Source: Ascoidea asiatica JCM 7603 (taxonomy: Eukaryota; Fungi; Ascomycota). From it: a stretch of DNA of 64,000 bases. The position numbers and the translations under genes are program-made. Location: contig BCKQ01000003.1 of the NCBI GenBank assembly GCA_001600695.1, positions 1,494,526 through 1,558,525 of the forward strand, given 5' to 3'. Positions 13,192 through 25,653 of this stretch are shown piece after piece. Position 1 is the first letter of the stretch. The number at the start of each line of letters is the position of its first letter. The notes under the pieces were generated by a model, which was not told the origin of the DNA, made no database searches, and saw nothing but the letters and a program-made list of their open reading frames with translations.

Positions 13192-14690
13192 ATGGTCAAT
13201 TTCAAAAATACACTCACAATAATATGTTGTTTAGTAATTAGTGTTAGTGCTTCTAGTATTTACAATATTAAAATAGAAGATTCATTGAAAAATCAATTTC
13301 AGAATCAGAATCAAAATGATGATAAACTTGGTAAATATAAAAATAATATTTTAAGTCAGTTATTCAATTTCAATCTATTCAATGATAATCATAGAGTTAA
13401 TATAAATGGTGATTATGAAAATAATTTCAATAAAAATAATCAATGTCCAATAGATATTCCATTAACATGTAGTAATTCATCTCCAATTGAAAATTCATGT
13501 TGTTTTGAATTTCCTGGTGGTATAATGTTATCTACTCAATTTTGGGATTATTATCCTCCAATTGGTGATAATCAAACTTTTACATTACATGGTTTATGGC
13601 CTGATAATTGTGATGGTTCTTATGAACAATTTTGTAATGAAAATAATCAATTAAATAATAATTTAAATTTAACTCAATTTTTAATTGAAAAAAATCAATC
13701 TGTTTTATTAAATAAAATGTTAAAAGTTTGGAAAAATTTTAATGGTAATGATGAAGAATTATGGAAACATGAATTTAATAAACATGGTACTTGTATTAAA
13801 ACTTTAAATAAAAATTGTTTAAATAATTATTATCCTTATGAAAATTTTGAAATTATAAAATTTTTTAATATAACTATGAATTTATTTGAAAATTTAAATA
13901 CTTTTAATTAGTATATCTATGAATATATTATATATTATAAAATTTAAATACTTTTAATTTTTTAAAATCAGAAAATATTTTACCTTCATTAACAAAAACT
14001 TATACAAAATTAGAAATTTCAAATGCTTTAAATAAAAATTTTAATAATTTAAATGTTTATTTTAAATGTAATAAATATAATGCTTTACAAGAAATTTGGT
14101 ATTTTCATTATTTAAAAGGTTCAATATTAAATCAAGATTTTATAAGAATTGATTCTTTAATGAATAATAATAATTGTCCTAATGAAGGTATAAAATTTCT
14201 TCCAAAAGGTTATTTACCACCAAATAAACCTCCAATAATACCACCAGGTTTACCAGGTAAAAAACCTTTAAATCCTAATAATAAAAAAGGTTATATAATT
14301 GTTGAAATTTTAGATAAAAATTCAAAAAAAATTTCTGATTATGGTTGTTTAATAAGTAATGGAAAATGGTTTAATACTAATATTAAATCTTGTGCTTTAT
14401 TTAATTTAAAAAAATCTAATTTTGGTGGTTATGATTTATTATCTTCTAAAGGAAATTGTTATTTAGATAAAAATACAAAACTTTTTATTTGTAATAATAA
14501 ATCTTCTAACTATAAAAATCAATTTGGTTTTGATAAATCTAATAATTTAATTAGTAATGGTGGTATTAATAGTTTCATTGCTTATCAAAAACCAAAATCA
14601 ATATCTCAAGAATCAATTTATTGGAATATTAAAAATAATGATAATCATATGACTTATAATTTAAATTTGAGATTTAAACAGATTGCTTGA
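13192..14690 (+). pseudogene. RNY1: Ribonuclease T2 (Rny1) interrupted by a 50-bp insertion; pseudogene, allele or assembly error
   Basis: Signal peptide, CAS I FTLHGLWPD, CAS II LWKHEFNKHGTC. TAG at 13909-13911. Removing 50 bp restores ...NLNTFNFLKSENILPSLTKTY...CNKYNALQEIWYFHYLKGS and joins ORF 14160-14690 (Rny1 C-terminal domain, GCLISNGKW). Confidence 0.8.
13889..13959 (+). repeat. 21-bp direct repeat AAAATTTAAATACTTTTAATT flanking a 29-bp AT-rich filler
   Basis: Copies at 13889-13909 and 13939-13959, exactly 50 bp apart. Confidence 0.9.
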
Positions 14691-16577: not shown

Positions 16578-17080
16578 AGTTAATTAAGCATATAACATAT
16601 AGTTAAATATTATTAGTGTTATATAATCAATAAGATATTATAATCTGATAATCTATTTCAATCTGTTCGGTAACAAAGGAAGCAATGGATGATTTATTCC
16701 CTTAACAATCCAATTGCAGTTTTCCAATATCACGATAATAATCATATATTAAAGTTGCTAGTACAGTACTAGTAAAGGAGGAGTTATTAGCACTACACTA
16801 CCATTACAGTACTAATCTCCCACTTTCTATGATGCTTTTGCGATTTAAAACATGAATATATTATTTCATACTATTTATTTATTCCAGTGTACACTATAAA
16901 AGACTCAGTTATCTCTTAAATTTTAATTTATATAATCTTATCGTATTATCAATATTATCAATATTATCAATATTATCAATCACTTAATTTTTTATAAATA
17001 ATAGCTTTTTTTATCATTTGAATATATCATTTGTGATTATATCAATATAATAATATATAATAAATAATCTTTATTATAAA

Positions 17081-17932
17081 ATGTTTCCCTTTGCAATTGA
17101 ATATCCTCCAGTTCCTCAATATAGTTTCTGGGGTAATCCAACTGCCACTATAGATTGGTGTGAAGAAAATAATGTAATAAGTCCATATATAACTGAATTT
17201 GTAAATACTTTAACAAATATTATTTATATTACAGTATCTTTATATTCTATTTATTCAGTTAAAAAAAATAAATTAGAACTTAGATTTCAATTAACTTTCT
17301 TAGGTTTTGCTATTGTTGGTTTTGGATCTTGGTGGTTTCATATGACTTTATTATATCAATATCAATTATTAGATGAATTACCAATGATATATGCAACTGT
17401 AATTCCATTATGGTCTTTATATTCAGAAAATGATGATAAAAAAATTCAAAAAAAAAAGGGAATTGCAATATTTGCTTTTGTATTAATATTTTCAATTTAT
17501 TATATTCTAATAAATAGAAATCCAGTATTTCATGAAATATTATATGGTTTAATTAATTTTTTAATTGTATATAAAGCTTATAAACTTACAATAAAAATTG
17601 ATAAAAAACTTTATAAAAATGAATTACAAAATCTTCATAAAACAATGGGTTATGGAGTTTCTATGTTTTCTGCAGGTTTTATATTTTGGAATTTAGATAG
17701 AATTTTTTGTTCTCAATTAATTAATACAAGAAGATTAATAGGAATTCCATATGGTTTTGTTTTAGAAGGTCATGGTTGGTGGCATATATTAACAGGTTTT
17801 GGTGTTTATTATTTTGTTATATATTTGGAATATTTAAGATGTTTTAGTCTTAATGTTCAAGATCATTATAAAATAACTTGGCATTTTAAAGTTTTACCTG
17901 AAGTTGTTTTAAGACCTTCATTAACAATTTAA
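17081..17932 (+). CDS. Alkaline ceramidase (Ypc1/Ydc1, CREST family), copy 1
   Basis: WGNPTATIDWCEEN, EFVNTLTN, GSWWFHMTL, QLLDELPM, LEGHGWWHILTG; 7TM-like hydropathy. Confidence 0.93.
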   Translation: MFPFAIEYPPVPQYSFWGNPTATIDWCEENNVISPYITEFVNTLTNIIYITVSLYSIYSVKKNKLELRFQLTFLGFAIVGFGSWWFHMTLLYQYQLLDELPMIYATVIPLWSLYSENDDKKIQKKKGIAIFAFVLIFSIYYILINRNPVFHEILYGLINFLIVYKAYKLTIKIDKKLYKNELQNLHKTMGYGVSMFSAGFIFWNLDRIFCSQLINTRRLIGIPYGFVLEGHGWWHILTGFGVYYFVIYLEYLRCFSLNVQDHYKITWHFKVLPEVVLRPSLTI

Positions 17933-18155
17933 ATAAGTTTCTCTCACTTTCTTTCAGTTTCAAAAATTAGACAAAAGACATAAAAAAAAAAAAAAACATA
18001 GAAAAAAATGCATAAATTAAGTATATAAATTATATATATATACATAAATATATATATTGTATAAATTAAATATAAATTGAATATAAATTAAATGTATAAA
18101 TACCTTTGATGATTATATAAAAAATTATGTAAATACTATAACTTCTCATAAATTT

Positions 18156-19940
18156 TTAAGCTAATTCAAAATCTAACCAACATTCATCAAATAAAGGTCT
18201 ACTTGTCCAACTATCTGCCATACACATCATAACTTCATCAGTTTTACCAAATTTTTTAATATCAATTCCACAATTATTTTTAAATTTTTCACTTTGATAA
18301 CCCATTAAAATATCACCATTAGTTTCATTTTCATTTAATACATAACACCAATCTTTTGAAATTGAAGTTTTAAAATTATAATATATAGCTGCAATAGAAA
18401 TTTTAATTTCTGTTAAAGCAAGATGCATACCTAAACAAAATTTTCCTCCAACACCAAATGGAAACATATAATTATTCATTTTTTTAATTCTTAAATTAAA
18501 TTCATCATCATTTTCATTTTCATCTTTTAACCAACGTTCTGGTATAAATTTATTTTCATTTGGAAAAATTTTTGAATCTCTTTGAAGTGACCATGGTTGT
18601 AAAGAAACAATTGTACCTTTTGGTAAATAATAATTATCATATAAATAATAATCAGATTTTATAATTTCTCTTGGTTCAGAACCTGGAATTGCAGAATGTA
18701 ATCTTAAAGATTCATTAATTATTGCTTCTAAATAAGGTAATTTATTTAATTCAAATATATCATTACTTGGTAATTTTAAATTATTATTTTTATTAATTTT
18801 TGAACCAAAAAATTCATTTAATTCTTTATTTAATTTAATTTGAATCATTTTATTAAATGGTCTTGATAATTCCCAAGTTATATAAGATAATGTAATTCCA
18901 GTTGTTTCATGACCAGCGGCAATATGATCACTTAATTCACTTGCAGCATTTAAACCTTTAATATTATTTTGATATAAAGTTTTAATAACAGGTTTAATTT
19001 CTCTTAAATTTGAATTAATTGAAGAATTTTCAAAATTTTCAACATTTTCAAAATTTTTAAATTTATAATTTAAAATTAAATTATCTGAATTTTCATCAAG
19101 ATATTTAATTTTTTCCCATAACCAATCTCTAATAAATTTTGAATTTTTTTTAATTTCTTTTGAAGCTACAATAGACCAAAATTTAGGTAATAAAGTTGTA
19201 TAAAACCACATTGAAGATTGTTGTCTATAACCATTTAAAACTAAATCTCTTTCTTTAATATTAGTTAAAAAATTAGTTGAAACAGATTCACCTAATTCAT
19301 AATAAGTTACAATATCCATTGCTAAAGCACTAAATAAATTATAAACATTAATACTTTTAAAATTTTTAATTTTATTATTTTTTAAAATAATTTTAAAATT
19401 TTTTTTTGATAAATCTGGAGTTTCTAAAGAAATTCCAGTTTTATAAATTATATTAATTAAATTTAAAATTTTATTATTTAAAAAATTTATTGAATTTTTT
19501 GAATATATTGAAGATTTTGAATATTGATTATTAATAATTTTTTTAAAATTTAAATGAATTTTATTATCAGTTGAAGAAAACATATTTGGTTTATTATAAT
19601 TTTTAAAATTTGAATAAAATTTTGATCTTGGTAAATTTTCTTTTAAATAAATTTTTTTTAAAAAAATTGGATCATTAATTGATAATTCAATTGGAGATAT
19701 TTGAATAATTTTACCAAATTTTAAATGTAAATTATTTAATAATTCATTTCTTTGTTCTAATCTTTGATTATTATAAATTGGAAATTTTGAAATTTTATAA
19801 ATTAAAGGACCAGGAAATTTTCTTAATGGATTTAAAAAAAATGGATAAATGAAATATGAATATATTAAATATGATAAAGTAATTGAGAATATTGAAAAAA
19901 CATAATGATTTAAAATATTTTGAATAATATCTGAAAACAT
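18156..19940 (-). CDS. Cytochrome P450 of unknown substrate (not recognisably Erg11, Erg5 or Dit2)
   Basis: N-terminal TM anchor plus PLRKFPGP hinge, I-helix DHIAAGHETT, K-helix ESLR, PERW, heme motif FGVGGKFCLG. First ATG at 19940 (track start is TTG). Confidence 0.93.
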   Translation of the reverse strand: MFSDIIQNILNHYVFSIFSITLSYLIYSYFIYPFFLNPLRKFPGPLIYKISKFPIYNNQRLEQRNELLNNLHLKFGKIIQISPIELSINDPIFLKKIYLKENLPRSKFYSNFKNYNKPNMFSSTDNKIHLNFKKIINNQYSKSSIYSKNSINFLNNKILNLINIIYKTGISLETPDLSKKNFKIILKNNKIKNFKSINVYNLFSALAMDIVTYYELGESVSTNFLTNIKERDLVLNGYRQQSSMWFYTTLLPKFWSIVASKEIKKNSKFIRDWLWEKIKYLDENSDNLILNYKFKNFENVENFENSSINSNLREIKPVIKTLYQNNIKGLNAASELSDHIAAGHETTGITLSYITWELSRPFNKMIQIKLNKELNEFFGSKINKNNNLKLPSNDIFELNKLPYLEAIINESLRLHSAIPGSEPREIIKSDYYLYDNYYLPKGTIVSLQPWSLQRDSKIFPNENKFIPERWLKDENENDDEFNLRIKKMNNYMFPFGVGGKFCLGMHLALTEIKISIAAIYYNFKTSISKDWCYVLNENETNGDILMGYQSEKFKNNCGIDIKKFGKTDEVMMCMADSWTSRPLFDECWLDFELA

Positions 19941-20302
19941 TATTAAGGTTAGGTTCTTAATGTTATTATAAGAAGAGCTTTTAATAAATTGAAATTGAAT
20001 CTTCAAGAAAAACCCAGTTTGTAGTCAAAGGAATATCCAATACCTTTATATTCTTTTTTATCATTATTATTAATATATATTCGAATAACTTTGATTTGAG
20101 TAAAAATTGGGAAACCGAGAAGATTGGCGCGTGGATATTCCAAATTGAGATAGAGAAACGAAGTTTGATTCGGCGATAAGAAAGAAGAATCTGTTGGTTA
20201 TCGGATTACAATGCAATATATTATATTATATTATATTATTATTGTATTATATTATATTATATTGGAAGCTTTAATAGATATAAAGAGAGATGTGAATGGG
20301 TG

Positions 20303-21082
20303 TTATAATGATTTCAAGGCATACATTTTAACAGGATATAATTCAGATGGTAAACCTTTTTGTTTTTCTTGAGCTATTAATTTCAAACCAGCTTCTTTAA
20401 ATATTTTTTTAAAACTTGAATCAGATCTAGTTACAGAACTATCAAGATCATCAAAATTATCAAAATTTGAATTATTTTCTTTAATTATTATTAAACCAGA
20501 ATCAGGTAATAAAGTTTTTTTACATTTTATTAAAAATTTTATTAAATTTTTATCATTTAAATGTCCAAGACACCATTGACACCAAATTAACCAATATTTT
20601 TTATTAATTGAAGGATTAAAATCTTGCATACCAATTGGATAAATTTCACCAATTTTATCTTTAATTTCATTATTTTGATTTATTAAATCATTCATTTCAA
20701 TTTTTATTTGTTTTATAAAAGATGGTGTAGGTTCTAATAAATCAATTTTATCACAAATTTTTATTAATAAATTTTTTGAAACTCTACCAATTCCAGCACC
20801 AATTTCAATACCATTTTTTTTATAATTAAGTTTTAATTCATTTGAAGATAATTCCATTCTTGTTGATAATTTTCTTAAAAATGTTCTAGATCCTATTATA
20901 TCTACTTTCGGTACACAAGTTGTTTCACCAAAACCACCAAGAACACCATCAACAGTTGCTGGAGTTGAATCCCAATATGAAATAGCATCTGAATAATTAA
21001 TTAAACTATCTGGACTTATTGGAGTACTATTATCAATTTCTTTTTTTTCAGAATTCTCTGGAATACTTTCCTTTATTGCCAT
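20303..21082 (-). CDS. TAE1: Alpha-N-terminal protein methyltransferase (Tae1/Ntm1)
   Basis: YWDSTPATVDGVLGGF, EIGAGIGRV, GMQDF, IWCQWCLGHL, IKEN, DSSVTRSD, LYPVKMYAL. Confidence 0.93.
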   Translation of the reverse strand: MAIKESIPENSEKKEIDNSTPISPDSLINYSDAISYWDSTPATVDGVLGGFGETTCVPKVDIIGSRTFLRKLSTRMELSSNELKLNYKKNGIEIGAGIGRVSKNLLIKICDKIDLLEPTPSFIKQIKIEMNDLINQNNEIKDKIGEIYPIGMQDFNPSINKKYWLIWCQWCLGHLNDKNLIKFLIKCKKTLLPDSGLIIIKENNSNFDNFDDLDSSVTRSDSSFKKIFKEAGLKLIAQEKQKGLPSELYPVKMYALKSL

Positions 21083-21482
21083 TGTTATTGAAATGTATCT
21101 ATTAGTTTTATTATTATTACTTATTGGTTATTTTACTTTTACTTTTACTTTTACTCTTACTCTTACTTTATACTTCTTGTAACACTTTTTTTGCTTCTTC
21201 ATGGAGCATGTTTTCTGCAGACGCGAAAAAATTCAAAACCACCAAAAATATTTTCAAATTTCAAATCAAAATCTTTGACGCCAATTACTCGGGTGTCATG
21301 TGATATAATGACTTTCATAAGAAAGATTCAAAATCATGGAACATCATAATAAATTATTATGATAATTCTAATAAGACTTTTTACAAAACTACGAAAGTAA
21401 ACTGATTGAATAATTATAATAAATTAAACATTTATTAAATACATAAAAGAAATATAAAAAAAAAAAAAAAAAACTATTAAAA

Positions 21483-21856
21483 ACTTGTCAGACTGCCATT
21501 GTTATCCATCCAAATAATTACTCCTTCCGAAAAAGTATGTAATAATGGATTGAAATCATTGCTCCTTTCTTAAAATATCAACAAAATACGGATATCTTTA
21601 CAAACGAAAGGCAAATTAAAAACAAGATATCCAGACCAACAAAGGATCACAGATAAACTAATTGAAATTCTCATTCAATGGATACAATGGTTTTCATCTC
21701 ATCATCCAAGTTGGATTTGATGGCTCTTTTGAAGAATCAAAGAGAGACGTGACCTATAGAAATGATCCTACTATTGAATTTGTTAGTAATTGAAACTATT
21801 AATATTATTATTATCATTTGAACCATATGGTAAGCTACTTACTGAAGTACGTCGAC
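21483..21856 (-). ncRNA. SNR17: U3 snoRNA (box C/D), intron-containing; exon 1 = 21856-21843, exon 2 = 21770-~21483
   Basis: Minus strand: GTCGACGTACTTCA | intron | TAGGATCATTTCTATAGG...CTCTTTGATTCTTCAAAAGAGCCA..AATCCAACTTGGATGATGAG...AATGGCAGTCTGACAAGT. This matches the budding-yeast U3 5' end, box A, hinge, box C' and terminal box D. Confidence 0.95.
21771..21842 (-). other. Spliceosomal intron (72 nt) in U3 snoRNA
   Basis: GTAAGT donor at 21842, TACTAAC branch at 21788-21782, TAG acceptor at 21771; inserted after nt 14, as in S. cerevisiae U3. Confidence 0.92.
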
Positions 21857-21904
21857 AAAGAAAAAAAAGGAAAATAAAATAAATAAAAAAGATGAGACTC
21901 TTTC

Positions 21905-21972
21905 TTCTTTTATAGCAAGTGTTCAATCTCAATTTTCACAAACTCTTTTTCAGAATGTTCACCAGTTACCCG
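21905..21972 (-). promoter_or_regulatory. U3 promoter: TATA box and Reb1-type site
   Basis: TATAAAAG on the minus strand near 21907-21914; TTACCCG at 21966-21972. Confidence 0.55.
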
Positions 21973-22174
21973 ACAACAGAACTTCTTTCCATTAACTAAA
22001 AGAAGGGCGCTGAAGAAGAAGGAAAACTCGTCAATAATTTATTAACAGAAAAAATAGGTCTATTTGTTAGGACAGCTGGGTCAAGGTATGTCCTATAATC
22101 CAATAGATATAATCTTTATATTTATACTGTATATTATTTATTGAATATTTATTAAGTTATTGATGAAGAAATAA

Positions 22175-23080
22175 TTAAATTAATTTTCTTTTCTCAATTA
22201 TTTTTTCTTCATAATCTTTAATTTCATTTTTATTTAAACTTTTAATTAAAACAACTTGTGGTAAGATATTAAAATTCCAAATTAATTCATATTTATCTTG
22301 AATATTTAAATTAAAACATCTTAAATATTCTAAATATATTATAAAAAAATAAACTCCTAAACCTGTAAATAAATGCCACCAACCATGAAATTCAAAAATA
22401 AATCCATATGGTATACCAATTTTTCTTCTAATATAAATTAATAAATTACAATAATAATTATCAATATTCCAAATTAAAAATCCAATTAAAAAAATTAAAA
22501 TTCCAAATAAATATGTTTTATTTAAATTTTTTAAATCTTTTGAATATTTTATTTTACTTATATTTTGTTTTAAATTATATGATTTATAAATTATTAATAA
22601 ATTTAAAATTGCAAATGAAAATTGATGTAAAATTGGATTTTTTAAAATAAATATATAAATAAATGTAATTAATAAAGTTATAAAAAAAATTAAAATTCCA
22701 ATTAAAATTTCTTTTTTTTTTGAACTATTTGTTGAAAATAATGACCAAAATGGTATACAAGTTGCATAAATCATTGGTAATTCATCTAATAATTGAAATT
22801 TATATAATAAAGTCATATGAAATAAAAATGATCCAATTCCAACAATTTCAAATCCAATACATAATAATAAAAATCTAATTTCTAATTTATTTTTAATTGT
22901 TGAATAAATTGAAAAATTTGCTAACATTATAAATAAAATATTTGAAATTGTATTTATAAATTCAGAAATATATGAACTTATTACATTATTTTCTTCACAC
23001 CAATCAATTGTTGATGTTGGTTTACCCCAAAAACTATATTGAGGAACTGGAGGATATTCAATTGCAAAAGGAAATGACAT
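22175..23080 (-). CDS. Alkaline ceramidase (Ypc1/Ydc1, CREST family), copy 2
   Basis: MSFPFAIEYPPVPQYSFWGKPTSTIDWCEEN, GSFLFHMTL, QLLDELPM, FEFHGWWHLFTG, basic tail KRKLI. ATG 23080 has an A-rich context and aligns with copy 1; an alternative ATG is at 23101. Confidence 0.93.
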   Translation of the reverse strand: MSFPFAIEYPPVPQYSFWGKPTSTIDWCEENNVISSYISEFINTISNILFIMLANFSIYSTIKNKLEIRFLLLCIGFEIVGIGSFLFHMTLLYKFQLLDELPMIYATCIPFWSLFSTNSSKKKEILIGILIFFITLLITFIYIFILKNPILHQFSFAILNLLIIYKSYNLKQNISKIKYSKDLKNLNKTYLFGILIFLIGFLIWNIDNYYCNLLIYIRRKIGIPYGFIFEFHGWWHLFTGLGVYFFIIYLEYLRCFNLNIQDKYELIWNFNILPQVVLIKSLNKNEIKDYEEKIIEKRKLI

Positions 23081-23481
23081 TTTTTTATAAATATTCACCA
23101 TAAACCAAAACTAGTATTTTCCATTACTTCTATAGTTTATTATTTATTATTAAAAATATGGAAAACCATGGAAAAACATTATTATTTATAAGATTTATAC
23201 TATTCTCATTTCTTCTTTTAACTTTATACATACATCTCAATTGCTAGCTAACATTATAATAAAAACACTAACAACAATTATCAACACAGTCTTTAACTCA
23301 TATCAAATAAAAAGAAAAAAAAAGACAAGACCAAGATAAAAATACGCAAGCAAATGAAAGTCAGTACGTAAAACTCTGAAAAGATTTCAATCCTCTATAT
23401 TTTTATTCATAGGCTCAGGTTCTTCTTACTCTACTCGATAAAATCAACAGCCTAAAGGTAAAAGTAATCATAAGAATAAAA

Positions 23482-23618
23482 GACGGGTTACGCGGAAGAC
23501 ACGGGACTGCACGGGAATGGAAGATCTCGGAATACACGGAAAAGCCAAATTCTGAGACAACGGAAAAAAACACGGAAGTGGACACGGACACGGATGACAT
23601 TTAGAACTTGCTCCGTTA
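23482..23618. promoter_or_regulatory. Array of CGG/ACACGGA motifs upstream of ceramidase 2
   Basis: Ten co-oriented CGG triplets within about 110 bp; exact ACACGGA at 23534, 23570, 23582 and 23588. Confidence 0.6.
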
Positions 23619-23838
23619 TCTTTGATTTAAGGTTTAGATTAGATATGGACCCTTAGAACTGGTATCAAATTTAGGATTCATCAGACCTAAATTATAACAT
23701 ATAAACTCATATCTATTTGAAACGATTCAATTTCATTATTGTATTGTATTATATTGTATTGTATTGTATTATCAAGGTTTTATATAAATCTAAAATGTTT
23801 ATTCTATGGAAGTTCAGGGTAATAAAAACTTATATATA

Positions 23839-24357
23839 TCATTCCAAGCATGTTTTTGCAAATCTACCATCTTTCATTATTAATTTACAAATTCTTGGTA
23901 AAACTTCAACTTGAATTGGTTCAACTGGATAATTTTCACCATCAACACTAATATATGAATCTTTAAAACATTTTGGTATTAATCTAAATCCTTTAACTTT
24001 AGAATATTGTATATAATTATTATTAAATGCTGATCCATTTTCTATATTTAATAATATATCAAATTTTTGTTTTAATGATAATTTTGTATTCATATAAACT
24101 AAATCAATTAATCCATCATTTGGTAATGCCATTGGAAAAAATGGTACATTATTTGACATAAATGGCATTTTACCTGTATATAAAATTCCTAAATTATCTA
24201 AATCATATCCTTTTAATGAATCCCATCCATCTGTACTTAAAATTTCTTCATTTAAATTTGGAAATTTAGTTTTAAAATTATCTTCTGATAATCTCAATTC
24301 TTTATTTTTTTCATTTTCAAATTTATTTTCAATTTCATTATTTTCAATTTCATATTG

Positions 24358-24410
<53 letters not shown>

Positions 24411-25653
24411 AATTTATAATTTTTTTATTAAAAGTTTTTTTAATTTCTTCTTTATCTTCAATTTCATATTTTAAATATAATTCACAAGGATATTTACTTT
24501 GTTTTAAAATTTGAAATAAAACTCCAATATCAAATCTCATTGATCCAAAAATTCTTAACCATTCTGTACCAATATCTGCATATGCAATAATTCCCCAATT
24601 TTGTGATAAAAATGATAATGTATTAATTTCTTCATTTGTTTTTAAATTTATTTGTTTTATTGACATTAAATCACTAATAATATATGAAGATTTAATTAAT
24701 GATAAAGTTGCAAATGATGGATTTAAAGTATGATGACAAGATAATGACATTCCATTACCTGAACCACATGGTAATTGACTTAAAATTAATTTTTCAAAAC
24801 ATTTAATTTTATCATTTCTTAAATTTAAACCATTTATAACTTCATATGGTATACCATCACCAGAAGCACAAACAATCATATCAAATTTTATTAAATTATT
24901 ATAATTTTTTATAATTTCAATAACATGTTGATAATATTCTGTTTTAATTAATTCAAATTTTATTAATGGACAAGCTTTTAAAATTGGTTTACAAAAATTA
25001 TTAAATAAATTTAATGCTTTACCTTTACCACTATGAGGATTAATAAAAATTAAAATATTTTTATTTATTTTAAAAGAATCTTTATAAGATTTATTAATAA
25101 TTTCATTAACTAATTTATTATTACTATAATTATTATTAAATTTTGAAGTTGTTGAATTTAAATCTAAATCTAAATCTAAATCTAAATCTAAATTTGTAAT
25201 GTTAGTTTCAATTTTATCTTTATTAATTGATTGAATATTTAAATTTTCTTCAGAAGATATAATATTTAAATTTATTGTAGTTGGAGTTAAATTATTATTA
25301 ATTTCTATTAAATAAGTTAATTTAATCTCATTTATTATATTATCATTTAAACTTTCAACCCAAGTTATATTATAATAAGGTATAAACAGTGTTTGTTTTA
25401 TATTTTTTAAAAAATCTTTATTATTATTTGAATTATTTAAAAAAGATGGTAAACATGATGGAAATATTGAATTTTTTTTAAAATTATTAAAATTTGAATT
25501 ATTTTGTTTATATTGACTTGTATTAATATTATTTTCATTAATTAAAACTTCATTATCACTTAAATTAAAATAATCATTTTCAATATCATTATTATCATAA
25601 ATTTCATCAATAATTTGAATTCCTTTGGTGATTAACTTTGCTTTATATATCAT
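23839..25653 (-). CDS. LCB4: Sphingoid long-chain-base kinase (Lcb4/Lcb5)
   Basis: ILIFINPHSGKGKA, CASGDGIPYEVINGL, QLPCGSGNGM, DIGTEWLR..GSMRF, FFPMALPNDG, ISVDGE. First ATG at 25653 (track start is TTG). Confidence 0.92.

Follow-up and report, generated by a model that had tools for sequence, protein, structure and literature searches.

Does a group of genes for ceramide breakdown and sphingoid-base phosphorylation, gathered around a cytochrome P450 in the yeast Ascoidea asiatica JCM 7603, represent a sphingolipid-processing module, or is it only a piece of inherited gene order? The genes lie in a 64,000-nucleotide stretch of contig BCKQ01000003.1 (assembly GCA_001600695.1, positions 1,494,526 to 1,558,525 of the forward strand), here called the window, whose own numbering is used below; its G+C content is about 20%, and the assembly is 20.3 Mb in 71 contigs. 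Between positions 17081 and 25653 it contains, in order, an alkaline ceramidase gene, a P450 gene, a gene for a TAE1-type methyltransferase, a U3 snoRNA gene, a second alkaline ceramidase gene and a gene for a long-chain-base (LCB) kinase of the LCB4/LCB5 type. A preliminary description, made from the DNA sequence, identified these six features at coordinates that Pfam and Rfam matches confirm, and correctly had the two ceramidase paralogs facing inward around the P450, one being on the + strand and the other on the - strand. It also proposed that the block is a catabolic, detoxification or signalling module, and this proposal finds no support beyond the neutral retention of small synteny blocks, in which unrelated neighbours are kept about equally. 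We favor the view, to which we give a probability of roughly 0.65, that the block is inherited microsynteny without demonstrated functional coupling, to which an old inverted ceramidase duplication has been added.

The genomic surroundings of orthologs of the P450 and of the ceramidases were inspected in about six independent lineages, a sample from which C. albicans, Yarrowia and the Pichiaceae are absent. In several of these lineages the P450 has a ceramidase as its immediate or next-but-one neighbor, in four different orientations. In Ascoidea rubescens the gene order is P450, Abhydrolase_2, ceramidase and a DAGK_cat (LCB4-type) kinase; in Babjeviella inositovora the ceramidase and P450 form a divergent pair; in W. 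anomalus they are in tandem, ceramidase first, and follow the genes VPS16-ELC1-CTLH-SGF11-SEN54-BRO1; and in C. verbasci (which falls within the CTG-Ser1 clade in the ceramidase tree) and C. parapsilosis they are in tandem with the P450 first. The C. parapsilosis P450 that adjoins the ceramidase is a full-length match with 36% identity and shares a distinctive cysteine-containing C-terminal tail; it is a true ortholog of the P450 in the window. Seven loci on metagenome contigs have the CTG-Ser1 order MET16-P450-ceramidase; one is the C. parapsilosis locus itself (100% identity) and six are further loci. Three Logan contig pairs (P0006/P0176, P0003/P0246 and P0009/P0140), in each of which a P450 hit and a ceramidase hit come from contigs of equal length, hint at additional loci of this kind. 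A four-gene block of MET16, P450, ceramidase and an opposite-strand MutS-family gene is seen in L011, L020, L021, L023, L026 and L030 of the loci that we collected, and in part in L006, L027 and L042. Since the adjacency occurs in Ascoideales, Babjeviella, Serinales and Phaffomycetales, the ceramidase-P450 pairing predates the split between Serinales, Phaffomycetales and Ascoideales. The preliminary description had mentioned, as unverified, a P450 neighbor of YDC1 in C. albicans, which if real would make the pairing old and conserved; the age and conservation are borne out, and the C. albicans neighborhood itself is upheld by proxy only, through the full-length ortholog in C. parapsilosis. Our literature searches found no paper on the ceramidase-P450 neighborhood, on a gene cluster with a ceramidase and a P450, or on the neighbors of C. 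albicans YDC1, and within those searches the pairing is new to the literature.

The pair is nevertheless separable. There is no ceramidase within 10 kb of the P450 in Lachancea, Kluyveromyces or Hanseniaspora, and yet the P450 is intact in all three; the two genes are likewise apart in a Hanseniaspora-like metagenome contig. Because the lineages that split the pair retain an intact P450, its function does not depend on a ceramidase neighbor. Inspection of ceramidase surroundings only, in Saccharomycopsis crataegensis, Trichomonascus vanleenenianus and Lipomyces oligophaga, turned up no P450 and no kinase within 10 kb of the ceramidase. Nor was a ceramidase found near any of 36 more distant metagenome P450 loci (L033–L041 and L043–L069), whose identity to the P450 in the window is about 23–39% over the best-matching segment, three of them having no tblastn match. 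We note that in Saccharomycopsis crataegensis a PAP2_3-domain gene (L012:5533-7008) lies two genes from the ceramidase; we take PAP2_3 to be the family of the inositol-phosphorylceramide synthase AUR1, and this nearness could be another sphingolipid gene adjacency or chance.

How well are neighbors without any tie to sphingolipids kept? SGF11 encodes a SAGA subunit that has no link to lipids. No more than 10 kb separate it from the P450 in Babjeviella, W. anomalus, H. vineae, L. mirantina and K. dobzhanskii; these represent four lineages, and the lineages with a ceramidase near the P450 also number four. In Lachancea, Kluyveromyces and Hanseniaspora, and in the Hanseniaspora-like contig as well, the P450 adjoins SGF11-(RMD5)-ELC1-VPS16, and in Babjeviella both SEN54 and SGF11 are still near the ceramidase-P450 pair. 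Among the Serinales the ceramidase adjoins the P450 in 9/9 loci open to judgement, MET16 adjoins the P450 in 9/10 loci, and the MutS gene adjoins the ceramidase in seven of the eight loci with enough downstream sequence. The A. rubescens locus gives a similar picture. It consists of three blocks, g1-YVC1 (g1 being a gene for a 1,709-residue protein), P450 through ceramidase-LCB4, and H3-H4-FNT, and each of these is intact in the A. asiatica genome, where g1 and YVC1 are adjacent on contig 1 at 2.43 Mb and H3, H4 and FNT are together on contig 1 at 0.97 Mb. (Intron-containing A. rubescens genes were translated straight through with X at stops, and these translations served only to locate homologs.) Thus A. 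asiatica retains roughly half of the adjacencies found at the A. rubescens locus, and as a result the survival of the ceramidase-LCB4 adjacency is not unusual. The co-retention of the genes of the locus is no greater than that of unrelated neighbors, which weakens the case for a functional module. The expectation of the preliminary description that ceramidase-P450-LCB4 linkage is better kept than that of housekeeping neighbors largely fails in this small sample, where SGF11, MET16, MutS, g1-YVC1 and H3-H4-FNT are kept about equally; and the adjacency of the kinase to a ceramidase is seen only in the window and in A. rubescens.

These gene orders suggest the following history. An alkaline ceramidase (the YDC1/YPC1 ortholog) and a P450 of the CYP5217/5223/5252 clade (see below) would already have been neighbors in the common ancestor of Serinales, Phaffomycetales, Ascoideales and Saccharomycetales, at the end of an ancestral block VPS16-ELC1-RMD5-SGF11-SEN54-BRO1-ceramidase-P450, of which different lineages would have kept different pieces. 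SGF11, SEN54, BRO1 and VPS16 are all absent from the window. In the Ascoidea lineage the sphingoid-base kinase gene would have come to lie beside the ceramidase, and in the lineage of the window an old inverted duplication of the ceramidase would have placed one copy on each side of the P450, with the TAE1 and U3 genes as bystanders in between. The Abhydrolase_2 gene (esterase/thioesterase type) of A. rubescens has an ortholog in Babjeviella (L001:11997-13112 and L002:2305-3024, 45–49% identity); in A. rubescens it separates the P450 from the ceramidase, and in Babjeviella it is three genes away from the ceramidase. Its matches in the A. asiatica genome are only 31–33% identical and are on other contigs; the gene may once have belonged to the neighborhood and then been lost.

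The P450 gene (18156–19943, - strand) encodes a 595-amino-acid microsomal cytochrome P450 (PF00067, E 1.2e-43) and is convergent with ceramidase paralog 1, their stop codons being 223 bp apart. Its likely start is the ATG at 19943; the open reading frame (ORF) begins at 20006 with a TTG, which is a mechanical start only. The protein has an N-terminal hydrophobic anchor, a PGP hinge, the I-helix motif AGHETT, an ExxR motif, PERW and the heme loop FGVGGKFCLG, and an alignment of 24 P450 sequences shows no variation at C503, E411/R414, R470/W471 and A343-G344-E346-T347. It is predicted to be an endoplasmic reticulum-anchored, reductase-dependent monooxygenase. There is no close paralog among the seven P450 matches in the genome, and it is single copy. 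Its best match is in A. rubescens (56% identity), followed by Babjeviella, W. anomalus (40–42%), Hanseniaspora, Lachancea and Kluyveromyces at 36–41%, and all of the full-length relatives at 34–56% identity, which also include those of Saccharomycodes and C. verbasci, are from budding yeasts. Match scores are 275 bits or more for the yeast orthologs and then fall to 238 and 235 (two contigs), 197 (the first named Pezizomycotina) and 126; a second protein search with the 24-sequence alignment brought in no further taxa, and neither search returned the family reference sequences (C. albicans XP_715414, Y. lipolytica XP_503945 and C. fabianii CDR39009). Outside the yeasts the only strong relatives are those of Podospora appendiculata and Lasiosphaeria miniovina (Lasiosphaeriaceae, Sordariomycete) at 28–30% identity. 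The Podospora homolog (L015:10001-11718 and 16749-18209; 30% identity) has a type III polyketide synthase-like gene 5 kb away and no ceramidase in its vicinity.

The preliminary description had called this P450 unassigned. The taxon set of its relatives matches that of the orphan CYP5217/CYP5223/CYP5252 cluster, and so points to membership in what has been described as one fast-evolving, often lost and budding-yeast-specific orphan clade, with CYP548 and CYP630 as its neighbors (Linder 2019, PMC6723986). No orphan P450 group is more widespread among budding yeasts than this one, which Candida species carry and whose function is explicitly left open (PMC6723986). Like these families, the P450 in the window is budding-yeast-specific, single copy and without known function, and has orthologs in the Kluyveromyces and Hanseniaspora lineages and in the CTG-Ser1 clade (PMC6723986). 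Its identity to orthologs outside Ascoidea, 34–43%, straddles the 40% family threshold, so that we give it no formal family name. The published account does not mention the ceramidase neighborhood that is seen here (PMC6723986), and the sole deletion reported in the clade, that of PICST_63000 in S. stipitis, was assayed only for growth on methylated amines (PMC5816127). The AlphaFold model is confident (pLDDT 82.7) and has a generic P450 fold by Foldseek, closest to CYP3A4/5 and CYP46A1; neither this comparison nor a sequence search of the Protein Data Bank (PDB) gave a clue to the substrate. If a substrate must be named, a long aliphatic chain would be the likeliest, because the neighboring family CYP630 includes CYP630B18, a specific oleic acid omega-hydroxylase (PMC4368105); this is the sole hint, and a weak one. 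We also observe a clade-conserved C-terminal tail that extends past the usual end of the P450 fold (residues ~530–595, window 18156–18440), in which W532, C533, D569, M573, M575, D577, Y579, T580, R582, P583 and C588 are near-invariant and residues 551–566 are modeled with low confidence.

The two ceramidase genes, paralog 1 (YPC1/YDC1 type, 17081–17932, + strand, 283 amino acids) and paralog 2 (22175–23101, - strand, 308 amino acids), are the only two ceramidase matches in the whole assembly. Both are full length relative to PF05875 (E 1.9e-89 and 4.7e-91; 299.9 and 305.2 bits with a cut-off of 32.5; profile positions 1–258 of 259), and both align over their whole length with human ACER3 (6g7o; E 5.8e-47 for paralog 1 and 3.4e-51 for paralog 2), with the S..FH, LLDELP and H..WWH positions kept. 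Paralog 1 retains the FHMT histidine, the H..WWH histidine pair, the preceding serine and the LLDELP aspartate, and paralog 2 retains the same metal-site residues; in ACER3 these are the zinc-binding histidine triad and the active-site serine and aspartate. Alkaline ceramidases cleave (dihydro/phyto)ceramide to a long-chain base and a fatty acid, and by their sequences both Ascoidea proteins should do so, releasing free long-chain base. In having two ceramidase paralogs the genome resembles that of S. cerevisiae with its YPC1 and YDC1, and full-length PF05875 domains with the histidine triad, serine and aspartate are common to both Ascoidea copies, YPC1/YDC1 and human ACER3. Unlike YPC1 and YDC1, the Ascoidea copies are 4.2 kb apart and would have arisen by a local inverted duplication and not by whole-genome duplication.

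The duplication is old, since the paralogs are only 59% identical (gaps excluded) and since the ceramidase tree has the topology (Cer2,(Cer1,A. rubescens)) with 97/93 support. Paralog 2 and the kinase gene are nonetheless in the same order and on the same strand as their counterparts in the A. rubescens locus (L001), and the tree tool flagged a biased composition of paralog 2. Either the duplication predates the separation of the window's lineage from A. rubescens, which then lost one copy, or the composition of paralog 2 distorts the tree; on both readings it is an old event. The 5' ends of the two genes are 91% identical in nucleotide sequence across codons 2–31. Gene conversion cannot be read from this value, because the extreme AT bias of the genome almost fixes codon choice; identical residues of the two proteins use identical codons at 70–89% along the whole gene.

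The kinase gene (23839–25653, - strand, with its ATG at 25653) encodes an LCB4/LCB5-type sphingoid long-chain-base kinase of 604 amino acids with a PF00781 DAGK_cat domain (60.8 bits, E 1.2e-16). Among solved structures it matches human sphingosine kinase 1 best (3vzb, E 1.2e-28; acylglycerol kinase gives E 1.6e-11), a domain and a nearest relative that place it with S. cerevisiae LCB4/LCB5 and human SphK1. It is the one DAGK_cat match in the genome, which indirectly supports its orthology to LCB4/LCB5. Its identity to the correspondingly placed A. rubescens gene is 52–65%, in an alignment that falls into two segments because of insertions, about 17 consecutive asparagines and an (LD)n repeat, located within and ahead of the catalytic region. 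Unlike LCB4 and LCB5 of S. cerevisiae it is single copy, carries long asparagine-rich, low-complexity insertions and adjoins a ceramidase gene; the ceramidase and LCB kinase genes of S. cerevisiae are unlinked. LCB kinase phosphorylates the free long-chain base, the step consecutive to that of the ceramidase, so the genes for consecutive steps of a pathway are physically linked in Ascoidea, as in a metabolic gene cluster. If about 30 of about 6,500 genes act in sphingolipid metabolism (rough figures of our own), some two such genes would by our rough estimate be adjacent in about 1/8 of genomes, and for this reason such linkage within a single genome is unusual and on its own not compelling.

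The hexamer TCCGTG occurs ten times in the window (2.16 expected; no shuffled sequence reached ten), and by motif count four of these copies fall within a 60-bp stretch of the ceramidase 2 promoter (23535–23594, unstranded). Similar CCGTG- and CCCGTG-like copies surround this cluster, and TCCGTG resembles half of a CGG element of the Pdr1/Pdr3 type. There is no copy of the exact hexamer, the only motif sought in these upstream regions, in front of ceramidase 1, the P450 gene or LCB4, and the genes of the locus are probably under separate promoters.

Several facts sit poorly with inherited microsynteny as the whole explanation. Ceramidase and LCB kinase catalyze consecutive steps around a toxic intermediate, the type of pair that fungal gene clusters tend to link. 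Among 19 window ORFs checked, only ceramidase, P450 and LCB4 are common to the window and the A. rubescens neighborhood. The ceramidase stays by the P450 through all four orientations, and no other gene has remained immediately beside the P450 in both of the lineages that lack the rest of the ancestral block (core Serinales and Ascoideales); moreover, with some six independent lineages the comparison with control genes has little power. Two of these facts are also what a functional sphingolipid module of two or three genes, ceramidase and P450 with or without the kinase, would offer in its favor: an adjacency that four lineages maintain although the orientation changes and the immediate outer neighbors turn over completely, and a core that is all that the two Ascoidea loci share. 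To them may be added that the only ceramidases and the only LCB kinase of the genome are all at this locus, that an orthologous Abhydrolase_2 esterase gene is in the neighborhood in both A. rubescens and Babjeviella (49% identity), and that CYP630 and CYP548 stand beside the clade in the published phylogeny (PMC6723986), CYP630B18 being the oleic acid hydroxylase mentioned above (PMC4368105). In such a module the P450 is proposed to oxidize a ceramidase product, the candidates being omega- or in-chain hydroxylation of a very-long-chain (hydroxy) fatty acid or of the free long-chain base; linkage would be selected because free bases and fatty acids are toxic, and the kinase would have joined in Ascoidea so that release and removal of the base are inherited together. 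We consider this unlikely, because SGF11, MET16 and MutS are kept beside the pair about equally well, because Saccharomycetales and Saccharomycodales split the pair yet hold an intact P450, and because no P450 or kinase is found within 10 kb of the ceramidase in Saccharomycopsis crataegensis, Trichomonascus vanleenenianus or Lipomyces oligophaga. Also against it speak the TCCGTG array in front of ceramidase 2, which has no counterpart upstream of the other three genes, the generic fold of the P450 model, and literature searches in which no paper tied the P450 clade to sphingolipids. The fullest form of the idea, in which ceramidase and clade P450 are an ancient functional pair, the P450 hydroxylates the very-long-chain fatty acid or long-chain base released from ceramide, and recruitment of the kinase plus duplication of the ceramidase made a three-enzyme catabolic locus in Ascoidea, we likewise hold to be a doubtful, if worthwhile, proposal.

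A P450 whose role has nothing to do with sphingolipids, such as detoxification of xenobiotics or plant compounds or action on some other lipid or aromatic substrate, would owe its place beside the ceramidase purely to history, and in that case the ceramidase-LCB4 adjacency alone might be weakly favored. The more distant P450 relatives are annotated as benzoate 4-monooxygenase and trichodiene oxygenase, the fold of the P450 is nearest to those solved for CYP46A1 and for the broad-substrate CYP3A enzymes, and the clade is fast-evolving and often lost (PMC6723986). Those annotated relatives, however, are only 21–25% identical, and nothing positive points to any particular xenobiotic, so that we find this reading quite improbable. 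Inherited microsynteny with an old ceramidase duplication accordingly remains our preferred account of the locus.

Like the CYP630B18-CPR2 pair of Grosmannia clavigera, in which the partner is functionally linked and the P450 acts on a long-chain fatty acid, the pair described here has a P450 from that part of the phylogeny conserved beside a partner gene; in G. clavigera, however, the partner is a redox partner and induction and activity have been shown, whereas in Ascoidea it is a hydrolase and the pair is known from its genes alone (PMC4368105). In the DIT1-DIT2 and PUL1-PUL2 pairs, too, a P450 lies beside one partner across many yeasts and the members of each pair co-occur (PMC6723986). 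DIT1 and DIT2 have a fixed divergent orientation and are lost together (PMC6723986), whereas the orientation of ceramidase and P450 varies, the two have come apart in Saccharomycetales, and loss of the P450 leaves the ceramidase in place.

The remaining genes of the block are the two bystanders. A TAE1/NTM1-type N-terminal protein methyltransferase gene is found at 20303–21082 on the - strand (PF05891, E 2.9e-78), and no gene of this type was present in any of the related loci inspected in other genomes. The U3 snoRNA gene (21483–21787, - strand) matches Rfam RF01846 Fungi_U3 with 127.6 bits (gathering score 95; model positions 1–274 of 274). A. rubescens is the closest relative of the window proteins (P450 56%, ceramidase 56%, YVC1 66% and FNT 68% identity). 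Elsewhere in the window an RNase T2 gene of the RNY1 type is split between two ORFs, 13192–13911 and 14160–14690, one with the catalytic domain and the other with the C-terminal domain, which suggests a frameshift, an insertion or an intron.

Should ceramidase and P450 prove to have no functional link, the locus would be an example of the ordinary survival of small yeast synteny blocks and a caution against deducing function from adjacency. If the two are a functional pair, this would give a first function to an orphan P450 clade found in most yeast orders and would place a P450-dependent step in fungal sphingolipid turnover. The ceramidase neighbor, which at least three orders have kept, provides this orphan clade with its first clue from genomic context.

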